A stretch of 63,919 nt of DNA, counting the filler, from Octopus bimaculoides (lineage: Eukaryota): NCBI RefSeq assembly GCF_001194135.2. It is 7 parts of 7 records of this genome, joined end to end, with 100 filler letters (N's around TTAATTAATTAA, not from the genome) between each part and the next. Parts side by side here need not be neighbours in the genome. Positions count along the whole stretch, not along the records: positions 59,316 to 62,380 come from NW_026355172.1; 6 more parts are not named here. One strand, given 5' to 3'. Below the pieces are notes generated by a model that was not told where the DNA came from, did no database searches, and saw only the letters and a program-made list of their open reading frames with translations. Position numbers and translations under genes: made by a program. Positions 59,216 to 63,250 of this stretch are shown in pieces. The first letter of the stretch is position 1. Each line of letters opens with the position of its first letter.

Positions 59216-59479
59216 NNNNNNNNNNNNNNNNNNNNNNNNNNNNNNNNNNNNNNNNNNNNTTAATTAATTAANNNNNNNNNNNNNNNNNNNNNNNNNNNNN
59301 NNNNNNNNNNNNNNNCTGAAGCTCTGCAAAGAATGGAAATGCCACTATCATTGGAAAGCAGGATGGTAGTAGGGAATGAAATGCATGCATAAAAGAATAC
59401 TTTGTCGTCAAATTTTTTCCCCACTTTCTTGAAGTTATCAAACAAGGAGCGCTTCCTGCTGTAGTTCCGTTCTAACTAG

Positions 59480-59670
59480 AGTTAGAGTCGGATTTCAAGG
59501 TTGAGGTTTAGGGTCAAACTCAGGATGTACGGCTAGAATTAGGGTTTAGGGTTGAGCTTTGGAATTACAATAAGGGTCTAGGGTTTAGGATTTAGGGTTA
59601 GAGTAGGGTTTTGCGTTGGAGTTTAAGATTTGAATTAGGGTTTAGGATTAGGCTGAGGGTTTAGCGTTGG
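59480..59670 (+). repeat. Degenerate interstitial (T)TTAGGG-like array
   Basis: Several ttaggg and tttaggg units mixed with variants (ttagga, ctaggg, ttagag). Confidence 0.75.
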
Positions 59671-59689
59671 TGTATAGGGTCTCTCTGAC

Positions 59690-59870
59690 CAGTGGTTGAT
59701 CTGGGGTTAATCAATTAGTTACATTCTTAGTGAACATTTTTTTATAGTTTTCTGGGACAAGTAAATACGAAAATCAGATTCAATGAGAACTTACATCAAC
59801 ATACCAAATTTGAAAATTTTAAATTTCAAACACTGTCACAGCAACAGAAAAGACCCATTAGTTTTTCTGT
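59690..59870. mobile_element. MITE-like repeat fragment (same family as 30290-30410)
   Basis: acttacatcaacataccaaatttgaaa...ctgtcacagcaacagaaaaga. Confidence 0.6.
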
Positions 59871-60348
59871 CTAACAAAAGAATGCAAAACAAACGTTCGA
59901 ACAGGCATGCAAACAATTTAAATAGAAAAAGTCCTCAATGAAGTTTGTTTGCGAATAAATTGTAATAAATACTGTAATAAGTTGTAATAATATTGTTCAG
60001 TTCATGTAAACAATTAATACATTTTTTTAATCGAAAATTCAAAAACGAAAGTTCAGAATATCGGTACATTGTGGTTGTAATAGTTTTAAGCAGATAACAG
60101 CTTGGCTTGTTACTTGTGGAGACAGGCAGCAATATGTCTGTGGCTTACGACTGGCTAAAATTGCCCAAAATAGGCAAATTTTAAAAAGCTAATAATTTTG
60201 TTATTAATTTATGGCAAAAATGAATTTCATTTCCATAATTAGCATGCATAACTACATCAATACACCAAATTTGAAATCAACTGTAACAAAATTGAAGGAA
60301 TTGAAAAGTGAAAGCCTAAGAGAAAAAGACCACAAAGGTTTTAGACTT

Positions 60349-61167
60349 TTAATAAATGCTTGCATAATCAATAGTGCTCACTTTGTGGTTCTGTTGAGTG
60401 CTGTATCTTGTCTGTGTTGAATGTTCCCTTTGTTCAAAGGGAGCTGATGATAATAAAAATTTCATGCGTTCATGAACAATTTGCAAGTCATCCTCTTGTC
60501 CAGTATATTCTGTCAGATCTGACAAGTCCTGAAACCATTCGATACGGAAGTTAAATACAGTTGTCCCCGTATAAAGAGCAGCTGCCGCTATAAGACTTGG
60601 TCTATAGTAATTTCTTACGGTGAGAAAGTCATCATATAGCACTAGTTCCACTATATAGTTCATCAAATGAAACAAATCGTGACGAGGTTTTAATTTGAGA
60701 ATAACCTGGAAATACGAAATGAAGATATAGGGAGTCATAAAAAACATCCTACCATGAAAACATTCAGAAACCGAAATGTACATGTTACGAAGCTCCTCCT
60801 CTGAAGACTCTGGGTCGACTGCAGCAGTCATGTGAATAATATTCAAACCCTCATCTGTTATACGAAGAAGCATCGTGTCAAAAGCAATTCTAAGACATGT
60901 TGCTCCAACACATTGCAGTTTTTCGCTTGAAATCGGTGGTGAGTTTCTAGAAGACAGGAATAAGTCAAATAATACAACTGATAGGTGGAGAACTTCCAGA
61001 GGAGCGCTGAAATGATCTGCGCATGCTATCATCCAGTTAACCACAGCCTTACGATCTCCAGGATGAAAACGATGGCGACCTTCTTGAAAATAATCACGGA
61101 CTTTCTTTTGCCGTCTTTCCATAAAACCTACCGAGTCTAATCTTCCAGCAACAACTGCAAAATCCAT
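60349..61167 (-). CDS. Divergent intronless cyclin (A/B-type cyclin fold), 272 aa
   Basis: Uninterrupted ORF with accATGg start. Cyclin box DRKAVVNWM, EVLHLSVVLFDLFLS, KLQCVGATCLRIA. Second fold YRPSLIAAAALY. C-terminal RYS..NHKVST. Confidence 0.9.
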   Translation of the reverse strand: MDFAVVAGRLDSVGFMERRQKKVRDYFQEGRHRFHPGDRKAVVNWMIACADHFSAPLEVLHLSVVLFDLFLSSRNSPPISSEKLQCVGATCLRIAFDTMLLRITDEGLNIIHMTAAVDPESSEEELRNMYISVSECFHGRMFFMTPYIFISYFQVILKLKPRHDLFHLMNYIVELVLYDDFLTVRNYYRPSLIAAAALYTGTTVFNFRIEWFQDLSDLTEYTGQEDDLQIVHERMKFLLSSAPFEQREHSTQTRYSTQQNHKVSTIDYASIY

Positions 61168-61499
61168 GGTCGTTCTTCTGCGAAATTAAACGTAACTCTT
61201 TTGTTTAGAAAGTACAGTGAAGTGTCAAGCGACGAAAATCAAAAACATTTCTCACTTGATTACGTCATTCAAACGTAACAATCAGTAAATGTCGTTCCAG
61301 TTTATTTCAATAATCAAAATCTTCAGTTGTATTTTCGATATTAAACTATTTATTGTTCTTTAACATTTGAAGTGTACTAAATTGATTGTTATTTACAATA
61401 TGATAGTTAAGCAATATATAACATTGAAATTATATAATTGAACATGTGTTACAATTCAGTTACGTAAATAGCATGAAATAATTTAAAATCAATTTAATG

Positions 61500-62110
61500 C
61501 ATAAAATTATCATAATAAAATTGCAAGGCATAACCTTTATGATACTTGGGCCTATAAAACACACAAATCATAATTCTAACCTATTTGCAAAGGGTATCAT
61601 TCTGTATTCTGGGAATGCAATCTGTTATCGATGCAGAGTGCATCTACGTCTGAGCGATAATCCCGTGGATCGTATGTAGTTTTGGTGCCAGCCCGAGCAT
61701 CTTATGACATAAATTAGGTTTTCTGAAGCACAAGTAAAGTCAGATTTGATTTTGAATTTTTGTCCTTCTTTGAAAAGGAATTCTGATCCTTCTAGAATGT
61801 TTGGGCATGTTGCGCAATTTGGTCGACCACATTTTTTCACTTTTACATCTATTATTTTGGAAAATAATTTTGCCTTAGTGAGGATCTTTTTTCGTGATTT
61901 CGGTTGTTTGTAGCTTTTAGTGATTTTATGTGTGTGTAAAATTTCCTTTAATTTGGAGTCCTTATGTAGCATTGGTAAATTTTGGGGGAAGACAAGGGTG
62001 TTATTTTCCTTGATTTCCGGAACATAGTTGTGCTTTAAACAGCGAATGGTATATTGAGACATTCAGAAATCTTTGAGTAGCAATCACGAGTAAGAAGCCG
62101 AATAAGAATC
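61500..62110 (-). mobile_element. Penelope/Neptune-type element 3' fragment (Zn finger plus GIY-YIG)
   Basis: KQPKSRKKILTKAK, KKCGRPNCATCPNI, FTCASENLIYVIRC...YIRSTG..LRRR..LHR*QI..PEYR. Confidence 0.9.
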
Positions 62111-62194
62111 TGCAAACAATTAACATTCACGATGACAATATGCAGCTCCACACACCTTTAGCGACAAGGCCCCAACTTTCCACCACATCTACAT

Positions 62195-62345
62195 TGAAAC
62201 TTTGGACCAAAACCAGTCAAGCTATCCAGTGGTTCAATTCTCTACGCCCGAAGTACACCTTTGAATATATACAAATCGACATTGATCAATACTACTCCAG
62301 CCTATACCCTATTCGTCTAACTAAGGCCCTAGTTTTCGCCAAAAA
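62195..62345 (+). mobile_element. Naiad-like Penelope RT fragment
   Basis: LWTKTSQAIQWFNSL..KYTFEYIQIDIDQYYSS...LTKALVFAK, homologous to 5560-5690. Confidence 0.75.
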
Positions 62346-63250
62346 CATTCCAACTTCCCTTGTGACAATATTGATATATTNNNNNNNNNNNNNNNNNNNN
62401 NNNNNNNNNNNNNNNNNNNNNNNNTTAATTAATTAANNNNNNNNNNNNNNNNNNNNNNNNNNNNNNNNNNNNNNNNNNNNGGCATTACTACACAGTTAAT
62501 GCCCTTTATATATAATTATATATATATATAGTTACAAGTGATGCTATCTGTGGGATTCTCAACTTTTTAGCTGCTATTTCTGAACTTCGGTATATGGTGA
62601 AGCAAATATTTGCTGATCCCTTAATTATATTTATAAATATATATGAGCTTTTAAATAAGTTCTCCACCAATAATGGTGCTTTCATACCGATGGGCTTGGT
62701 AAAAATTATTAATTGTTAATTGATTTATTAATTAATAAATTGATAATCCTTTACCCTTTTAATTTGTATATATATATATATATATATATATTTAAATACA
62801 TTATATGCATATATACTTATACGCGTAGATATATATTGCTATTTTTTTTATCTGCAGACGTTAAAAATTAACTCAAAGGTGCGATAAGTGTCATGCACGA
62901 AACTCTTGCTACTCGAGTCAATTTGAGTCTCCACCAGGTTAAAAATTAAATATGCACAAATACACATACATACATACATACATACATACATGCATGTATG
63001 GATGGGATTGACTCGTGAAACAATGCCTCAAAAATAAATAAATTTCTGTCATTTGGTTCCGCCATCCTTACGACCCTTCACAACGAGACTCAATTTGCCT
63101 TTTTTTTTTTTCCTACAAAGCAATTTAACAAAACGAAATAAAAACACACACAAAAAATAACGAATACTAAGTAAAAAAAAAAAAATCATATACAAACAAA
63201 CAAATAAATGAATAAGAGAAAAACAAATGCTCAAGACAAGATGATGCAAG

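Follow-up and report, generated by a model that had tools for sequence, protein, structure and literature searches.

Can a cyclin be kept by selection once it has lost the residues by which cyclins hold their cyclin-dependent kinases (CDKs)? This question is raised by a gene of Octopus bimaculoides that lies on the minus strand at 60349..61167 of the DNA analysed here, a stretch of 63,919 nucleotides joined from seven parts of the assembly GCF_001194135.2 and referred to as the window; the gene itself sits in the piece 59316-62380, which comes from NW_026355172.1. A first-pass annotation had taken it for an intact but CDK-contact-deficient cyclin, a lineage-specific retrogene under selection that may bind substrates or inhibitors without activating a kinase. 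With a probability of roughly 0.6, the comparative evidence presented below points to a functional, CDK-uncoupled member of an octopod-restricted family of intronless cyclin-fold proteins.

The coding potential of the locus is readily established, and the following features define it.

60349..61167, minus strand: single-exon coding sequence (CDS) of a core-only A/B-like cyclin of 272 amino acids (aa), with the stop codon TAA at 60349-60351
61164..61171, minus strand: start context GACCATGG, with Met1 identical in all 11 family members
61186..61188, minus strand: in-frame TAA six codons 5' of the ATG, within the invariant TTTAATTTYRCAG block

The open reading frame (ORF) comprises 272 codons plus the TAA, is uninterrupted and carries no lesions; at the base composition of the piece, the chance of 272 open codons is about 1e-9, and the other ORFs of the same piece are short and fragmentary. 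An N-terminal extension is absent, with the ORF beginning 35 residues before helix a1 and the in-frame stop lying six codons upstream, and direct reading of residues 1-35 revealed neither an RxxL nor a KEN motif. Thus, what had been read from the sequence at first, namely a lesion-free frame with a good start context, lacking an extension and a destruction box and surrounded by broken ORFs, holds in all these respects.

Identity as a cyclin is supported by profile, structural and sequence comparisons. In the Pfam scan, the window protein matched Cyclin_N (E=1.4e-11, 44.6 bits, cut-off 23) and Cyclin_C (E=9.6e-13, 48.6 bits, cut-off 22) only, with no F-box. The Cyclin_N match ends at profile position 84 of 127, so that helices 3-5 of the first box already stand out as unusual. 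An AlphaFold2 model, for which an alignment of the family and 51 canonical cyclins served as input, reached a predicted local distance difference test score of 95 and a predicted template modelling (TM) score of 0.92. It features an N-terminal helix (3-19), a five-helix first box (36-136) and a full second box (146-244), which correspond to the following stretches.

61111..61161, minus strand: N-terminal helix, residues 3-19, as in cyclins A and B (AlphaFold2 model)
60760..61062, minus strand: N-terminal cyclin box, residues 36-136, helices a1-a5 (Pfam and AlphaFold2 model)
60436..60732, minus strand: C-terminal cyclin box, residues 146-244 (Pfam and AlphaFold2 model)

Searching the PDB with Foldseek returned full-length matches to cyclin A2 and cyclin B1 (TM 0.78-0.84, about 20-22% identity), while viral cyclins matched more poorly than the cellular A/B cyclins, with TM values of 0.58-0.68. 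A profile of the family likewise scored best against cyclin A2 in the PDB (78 bits, 6e-21), followed by B1 (57 bits, 2e-14), D1 (53 bits), F (39 bits) and E1 (36 bits). The best canonical sequence matches are B-type cyclins of unrelated eukaryotes, whereas the profile search favours cyclin A2. Judged by its predicted fold, the window protein is a member of the cyclin superfamily and a bare A/B-type core, and in sequence comparisons the family forms a long branch within the A/B group.

The residues in contact with the CDK were read from a MAFFT alignment of 61 sequences, comprising the 51 canonical cyclins and ten family members, and compared with a HMMER alignment. In the numbering of cyclin A2, the Lys266 column holds K and the Glu295 column E in 51 of 51 canonical cyclins, and the Phe304 column is aromatic (F, Y or W) in all 51 as well. 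None of the three residues is found in the window protein.

60877..60879, minus strand: codon of D97 at the Lys266 position according to HMMER; MAFFT instead deletes an 'SK' dipeptide, and Lys is present in neither alignment
60778..60780, minus strand: codon of Y130 at the Glu295 position (HMMER and MAFFT)
60751..60753, minus strand: codon of G139 at the Phe304 position (alignment with canonical cyclins)

The motif IAFDTML, which had been proposed to replace the helix-3 motif, was indeed found in this place at residues 94-100 (60868-60888), with the Lys266 equivalent gone. For LRNMY (residues 126-130, 60778-60792), the proposed loss of the helix-5 glutamate was retained, but the register had to be corrected, since HMMER and MAFFT both align Glu295 with Y130 and not with M129. 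The loss of CDK contacts is even broader than claimed at first, since the Phe304 position is also changed. Across the family, the replacing residues differ among clades, with D/S/E/I at the first, Y/H/R/L at the second and G/I/F/H at the third position (the last counted as G in five, I in two, F in two and H in one of the aligned members).

The importance of these positions is known from other cyclins. The Lys-Glu pair forms hydrogen bonds with the backbone of the loop ahead of the PSTAIRE helix and is conserved in complexes of CDK2 with cyclins B and E1, CDK9-T1, CDK4-D3, CDK6-v-cyclin and Pho85-Pho80 (PMC3590450). Binding of human cyclins to Cdk1 is prevented experimentally with the triple-alanine mutation K266/E295/F304, and CDKs are not bound by cyclin F, in which these residues are naturally missing (PMC12356897). 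By its aligned residues, the window protein amounts to a naturally occurring triple mutant of the CDK-docking triad, and the canonical activating CDK complex is probably no longer formed.

The absence of the triad is a property of the whole family and not of a single aberrant copy. When 1.84 billion representative proteins were scanned exhaustively with HMMER, six close representatives (E 1e-89 to 1e-26) were obtained; the next match was the two-unit protein P0007 at 1.7e-16, and ordinary cyclins started at about 1e-10. A 90%-cluster search contributed three more proteins of 272 aa with 70-78% identity. Family membership is based mainly on the exhaustive HMMER scan, as a separate profile search missed known members. 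All named members belong to octopods, i.e., O. bimaculoides (4 genes), O. sinensis (2), O. vulgaris and Argonauta hians, and carry automatic names such as 'cyclin-B2-1-like', 'cyclin-B1-2-like' or 'uncharacterized'. A further clade (D) consists of P0006 and P0160 from SRA and ENA assemblies and shows no DNA similarity to the Octopus loci. Altogether, at least four clades can be told apart in the family; together they contain 11 or more paralogs and orthologs, all intronless, with lengths of 257-276 aa and the triad absent in all of them. Every CDS is a single uninterrupted ORF, including that of O. sinensis P0151 (268 aa, L004 10001-10807), the C-terminus of which is swapped in the public model via a spurious 4-kb 'intron'. 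According to the sequence comparisons, both the clades and the loss of the triad predate the split of Octopus and Argonauta. As a separate observation, the protein P0007 (603 aa, from an ENA contig) consists of a single chain with two complete cyclin units in tandem; it features the Glu295 equivalent together with an Arg at the Lys266 position.

Within Octopus, the copies are clustered. In O. bimaculoides, a distance of 17 kb separates P0156 from P0001 on CM046604.1; O. vulgaris harbours three copies inside 24 kb, and P0157 and P0151 of O. sinensis share one chromosome. No protein identical to that of the window gene is on record, and the DNA nearest to the window locus is that of the O. bimaculoides scaffold LGKD02024015.1 (L011) and of chromosome CM046604.1 (L012). 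The alignable part of the window piece is 59797-61592 for L012 and 60231-62380 for L011, at about 94% identity overall, and homology among most copies stops at 61592. Neighbour joining of eight sequences from the clade of the window gene gave the tree ((Ob001,OvC),OvA),((Os157,OvB),(Ob156,(Ob155,WIN))). On this basis, the window gene and O. bimaculoides P0155 and P0156 form a young triplication which is co-orthologous to one gene of O. sinensis and O. vulgaris. Because at least 425 bp of the 5' flank and at least 550 bp of the 3' flank are homologous between paralogs, the window copy arose from duplication at the DNA level; no poly(A) remnant was found 3' of the gene, the longest A run being A7. 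A retrocopy origin of the founder of the family is nevertheless plausible. Of the proposed lineage-specific retrogene, the lineage specificity is therefore upheld by the octopod origin of all named members, while the notion of a solitary retrogene gives way to a family of at least 11 members with co-duplicated flanks.

The chief new finding is the manner in which the coding sequence has changed. Compared with the two other O. bimaculoides copies, the 5' flank of the window gene (61168-61592) is 96.5-96.7% identical, the 3' flank about 96% and the upstream transposon fragment 97.3%, but the CDS 89.9-90.7%. Pairwise rates amount to 0.115-0.125 for nonsynonymous (dN) and 0.045-0.054 for synonymous substitutions (dS), i.e., a ratio (omega) of 2.3-2.5 according to NG86 and 2.4-2.8 according to YN00. 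Likelihood fitting (GY94) resulted in pairwise values of 2.7-3.15 and rejected omega=1 in all three pairs (p=0.0015-0.0044), a result that is independent of any tree. The dN is about three times the flank divergence; this faster evolution of the CDS was not part of the first-pass annotation and emerged later from the comparison of flanks and CDS. Among the codons of the trio, 83 vary in the encoded amino acid versus 8 with synonymous differences only, and the changes specific to the window lineage comprise 23 nonsynonymous and 1 synonymous.

Codon models fitted to the eight-sequence tree agree with this picture. The one-ratio model M0 gave omega=1.37 (likelihood-ratio test (LRT) against 1 = 6.75), and M2a was preferred to M1a with an LRT of 70.2 (p=6e-16), assigning 23% of the sites to omega near 0, 56% to 1 and 21% to 4.3. 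In the branch model, omega reached 2.85 on the branches following the triplication (LRT against 1 = 14.2, p=1.7e-4) and about 2.5 on its stem, versus 0.4 on the ortholog branches of O. sinensis and O. vulgaris. A posterior above 0.9 for omega>1 was obtained for residues 5, 11, 16, 35, 52-54, 102-103, 123, 206, 210, 224-229, 237, 240, 243, 246, 248, 257-259 and 270; mapped onto the secondary structure, the first three of these sites fall within the N-terminal helix. Constraint is likewise evident. Helix a2 and the loop that follows it (57-85) are almost invariant in the trio, and at the 39 positions without variation among the other ten members, the window copy always carries the common residue. 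Purifying selection was found in clade D (P0006 vs P0160, omega 0.14-0.21) and in clade C (Argonauta vs O. sinensis, omega about 0.25, at saturated dS). The early suggestion of selection is thus borne out, as omega is significantly above 1 in the subclade of the window gene and 0.14-0.4 in other clades; the dN/dS ratio, which had been named as a check, is not close to 1, with about 23% of the sites strictly constrained. In terms of these substitution patterns, the window CDS has diversified under positive selection after duplication, while conservation was maintained in the fold core, at the start codon and in the promoter-proximal flank.

Two other sources of a high ratio were considered and rejected. 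Constraint on synonymous sites, e.g., by structures for RNA editing, would lower dS, but the observed dS of 0.045-0.054 is at least as high as the flank divergence of 0.03-0.04 and the 2.7% divergence of the transposon fragment. Gene conversion from distant paralogs as the main cause of the fast CDS would raise dS too; it remains a caveat for the site models.

The flanks of the gene were duplicated together with it and contain several candidate regulatory elements.

61168..61592, minus strand: co-duplicated 5' flank, putative promoter and 5' untranslated region (UTR), from paralog alignments
59797..60348, minus strand: co-duplicated 3' flank, putative 3'UTR, 96% identical to O. bimaculoides L012
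61257..61278, minus strand: near-invariant inverted repeat TTACGT-N7-ACGTAA with two ACGT-core half sites resembling those of basic leucine zipper (bZIP) factors or the cAMP response element (CRE), from eight paralogs and orthologs
61178..61190, minus strand: invariant polypyrimidine-CAG block TTTAATTTYRCAG, 10 nt before the ATG, from eight paralogs and orthologs
59475..59680, strand not assigned: array of degenerate TTAGGG-like repeats with which the duplicated unit closes distally on its 3' side, recurring in L013, L014 and L001

In all comparisons with copies outside the P0157 lineage (O. sinensis and O. vulgaris), conservation is higher in the 5' flank than in the CDS; between the window gene and Ob001, for instance, the upstream region is 86.5-88.8% and the CDS 73.8% identical. 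Conservation across paralogs covers the 170 nt upstream of the gene and the start context, and the nearly invariant upstream blocks also include TTTAATTTYRCAGAAGAACGACCATG. The inverted repeat at 61257-61278 could represent a bZIP/CRE-type promoter element, and TTTAATTTYRCAG resembles a splice acceptor, which makes it a possible boundary of a 5'UTR intron. The 3' flank holds a single candidate for a polyadenylation signal, ATTAAA at 60026-60031. The TTAGGG-like array belonged to the ancestral duplicated unit, since the paralogous units in L013, L014 and L001 all carry it at the matching distal 3' end.

Further observations concern the repeats around the gene. The 3' flank contains a direct repeat of about 55 nt (60240-60296 vs 59780-59835, TTCAAATTTGGTRTRTTGATGTA...), and related segments occur inverted in L001 and L014; this is probably a small interspersed repeat. 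Upstream of the gene, an ORF of 145 aa at 61625-62062 (minus strand) encodes '...CGRPNCATCP...NLIYVIRCSGWHQNYIRSTGLSLRRR...', which resembles a decayed zinc-finger and GIY-YIG endonuclease domain of a Penelope-like retroelement, and Pfam found nothing significant in it. Arranged head-to-head with it, an ORF at 62140-62380 (plus strand) runs off the edge of the piece and has the appearance of a reverse transcriptase's N-terminal portion. The Penelope-like fragment is common only to the O. bimaculoides scaffold L011, with 97.3% identity; in O. sinensis and O. vulgaris, the part 61964-62378 is situated about 5 kb further upstream.

Comparison with known systems helps to place the family. With cyclins A2 and B1, its best profile matches, it has in common the N-terminal helix and two five-helix boxes, and the octopus proteins keep the Arg211-Asp240 pair, Trp217, the KLQ motif and the C-terminal 'RY...VS' signature. 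Unlike these cyclins, they feature no regulatory N-terminus, destruction box, Lys266, Glu295 or Phe304, and their genes are intronless, about 20-22% identical to the canonical ones, octopod-restricted, multi-copy and, in the subclade of the window gene, subject to omega>1. The best functional analogy is offered by cyclin F (CCNF), in which the cyclin fold is used independently of CDKs; in contrast to the octopus proteins, which are bare cores with an altered patch, cyclin F features an F-box, a PEST region and a working RxL patch. The triad was lost independently of cyclin F, as the family scores 39 bits against cyclin F and 78 against cyclin A.

The cyclin B-related CNTD1 works without CDK binding in vivo in mouse (bioRxiv 10.1101/750596). 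This meiotic crossover factor, CNTD1/COSA-1, shows that cyclin-like proteins of the germline can act apart from cyclin function. In vivo, it exists in a form devoid of the N-terminal cyclin domain, while both lobes are present in the octopus proteins; moreover, it is encoded by a single-copy gene that is conserved widely, in contrast to a lineage-specific and amplifying family. The exhaustive HMMER scan gave no specific sequence relationship to CNTD1. The window gene is thus a member of neither the cyclin F nor the CNTD1 family, having no F-box, two complete lobes and its nearest sequence matches among cyclins A and B. A lineage-specific, multi-copy and fast-evolving family derived from cell-cycle regulators also exists in primates, i.e., Speedy/RINGO E (SPDYE), but Speedy proteins are CDK activators of another sequence family and gene structure. 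The cyclins of gammaherpesviruses and giant viruses are, like the octopus proteins, short, reduced to the boxes, intronless and fast-evolving. They differ from them in keeping the Lys/Glu pair and activating CDK6 (PMC3590450), as well as in the lower structural similarity given above.

Whether another surface of the cyclin, the patch that recognizes RxL motifs, is still in use has a bearing on the possible function. It corresponds to the following feature.

61024..61056, minus strand: MRAIL-equivalent D38-R39-K-A-V-V-N-W45-M-I-A48, with Arg and Trp kept and the changes Met210->Asp and Glu220->Ala

As had been noticed at first, the Arg and the Trp of the MRAIL/W patch are retained (R39 and W45). 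R39 (=Arg211) and D68 (=Asp240) are invariant across the family, and W45 (=Trp217), L84 (=Leu253) and Q85 (=Gln254) are kept in the window protein. In the structure of cyclin A, Arg211 is buried and structural, pairing with Asp240 and stabilising the first cyclin box. Structures of cyclin A with p27 or RxL peptides identify Met210 as a hydrophobic residue of the patch and Glu220 as the acidic reader of the RxL arginine. These two positions are changed to Asp or Asn and to Ala, respectively, in all ten aligned family members, which makes a classical RxL patch doubtful, and the Ile213 equivalent of the window protein is A41. Retention of Arg and Trp is thus weak evidence for substrate binding.

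These observations have to be weighed against explanations other than a CDK-uncoupled function. It is unlikely, though worth considering, that the protein still activates a CDK, perhaps a lineage-specific one, via a remodelled interface; the fast change would then reflect co-evolution with the kinase, or the three paralogs might be specialising for different sets of CDKs and substrates. The confidently predicted A/B architecture is complete and extends to the N-terminal helix, by which cyclin A packs against its CDK, and several of the variable or selected sites lie on the former CDK face, i.e., in the N-terminal helix, the a3-a4 loop and the start of a5. Moreover, activation is possible without the triad, as shown by Speedy/RINGO, non-cyclin proteins that activate CDKs without these residues. 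Against this stands that all three hot-spot residues are gone and that the replacing residues vary between the clades, which makes a conserved alternative CDK interface unlikely; in addition, the triple change abolishes CDK binding experimentally, and cyclin F, naturally without the three residues, binds no CDK (PMC12356897). Rather less probable still is a decoy, a special case of the CDK-uncoupled reading, that keeps the MRAIL patch and soaks up RxL substrates or CIP/KIP-type inhibitors with no kinase activation. It would be in line with the retained W45, L84 and Q85, with residues 57-85 being nearly invariant in the trio and with 'DRKAVVNWMIAC' (residues 38-49) being nearly invariant in the clade of the window gene, and cyclin F provides a precedent for CDK-independent RxL recruitment (PMC12356897). 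The replacement of Met210 and Glu220 in ten members and of Ile213 in the window protein argues against it, as does the structural role of the retained Arg, and the conservation of a2 is equally explained by constraints of the fold.

That the gene is a young non-functional duplicate or a retro-pseudogene that has acquired no lesion yet is very improbable, even though it sits among transposon fragments, other family copies carry a stop or frameshift and, at 9-10% CDS divergence, an intact ORF could persist by luck. Neutrality predicts an omega near 1 and equal divergence of CDS and flanks, but omega amounts to 2.3-3.2 and dN to about three times the flank divergence; no invariant residue is violated among 39, about 23% of the sites have an omega near 0, the start context and the upstream 170 nt are conserved, and purifying selection has acted on sister clades from a time before the split of Octopus and Argonauta. 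A cyclin carried by a virus or mobile element, be it an endogenous viral cyclin or a transposon passenger, can hardly be credited at all. It would account for a short, intronless, box-only and fast-evolving gene as known from viral cyclins, for the Penelope-like fragments upstream and for the telomere-like repeat at the 3' end of the unit. The transposon fragment, however, is common to one paralogous locus only, the chromosomal cluster that holds the copies is conserved among O. bimaculoides, O. sinensis and O. vulgaris, and the flanks examined contain neither terminal repeats nor viral genes. Viral origin was rejected on account of the Foldseek comparison, in which viral cyclins scored lower (TM 0.58-0.68) than cellular A/B cyclins (about 0.8).

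Several findings nevertheless weigh against a functional, CDK-uncoupled protein. The loss of CDK binding is deduced from three residues, and the N-terminal helix and the hydrophobic residues of a3 and a5 could still support a non-canonical complex. Taken alone, the terminal branch of the window gene is borderline (omega 2.56, p=0.051). The selected sites are scattered over the N-terminal helix, 52-54, 102-103, 123 and especially 206-270, without a single obvious interface. Shared derived sites in the trio back all three pairings (13/9/9) in an interleaved manner, which indicates homoplasy or short tracts of gene conversion, and these can inflate the LRTs of site models. Furthermore, the O. vulgaris ortholog of P0157 (L014 13443-14261) has a premature stop at codon 35, which the public model P0158 (191 aa) skips through an upstream exon, and a copy of the window gene's clade in Logan contigs (L009/L010, from SRR11869391 and SRR11869394) contains a stop and a frameshift, P0005 being its truncated product. 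Individual copies of the family do die, as these two examples demonstrate, and the disrupted Logan copy still retains the conserved 5' flank. The Logan contigs were also considered as evidence of expression and rejected as such, for their identical ends in three runs resemble genomic graph boundaries and they feature no poly(A) tails.

For a functional, CDK-uncoupled family, the following course of events may be proposed. The docking triad Lys266/Glu295/Phe304 was lost before the split of Octopus and Argonauta; duplication in a tandem cluster led to three young paralogs, followed by adaptive coding change behind a conserved putative promoter. The protein would most likely serve as a CDK-independent binding module with a cyclin fold, either as an adaptor or as a competitor, the surfaces of which co-evolve with fast-changing partners. 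Tandem amplification, omega>1, birth and death of copies and a conserved promoter are typical of genes involved in conflicts, either of the germline and reproduction or between host and parasite. A tentative extension, which we would not yet favour, is that the surfaces of the octopod pseudo-cyclins are recurrently selected by fast-changing antagonists in an arms race. Such partners might be germline or meiotic-drive factors, or pathogen proteins targeting host cyclins, for which the pseudo-cyclins would act as decoys; individual Octopus lineages would then see new copies arise, diversify and disappear again.

Few regulators of eukaryotes are as conserved as the cyclins. To our knowledge, the Lys/Glu/Phe docking triad is essentially universal, with cyclin F as the textbook exception. 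In the literature, no paper was found that mentions these genes or a comparable expansion of octopus cyclins. As far as sequence can tell, what is new here is an atypical, lineage-specific cyclin family deficient in CDK contacts, in which the subclade of the window gene is under positive selection. An entire lineage-specific family has lost the triad independently, yet it has been kept since before the Octopus/Argonauta split, with some of its clades under purifying selection. If these proteins are CDK-independent, they would represent a natural experiment on the capabilities of a bare cyclin fold, and they would be candidates for an innovation specific to cephalopods in the biology of the cell cycle, the germline or conflict.

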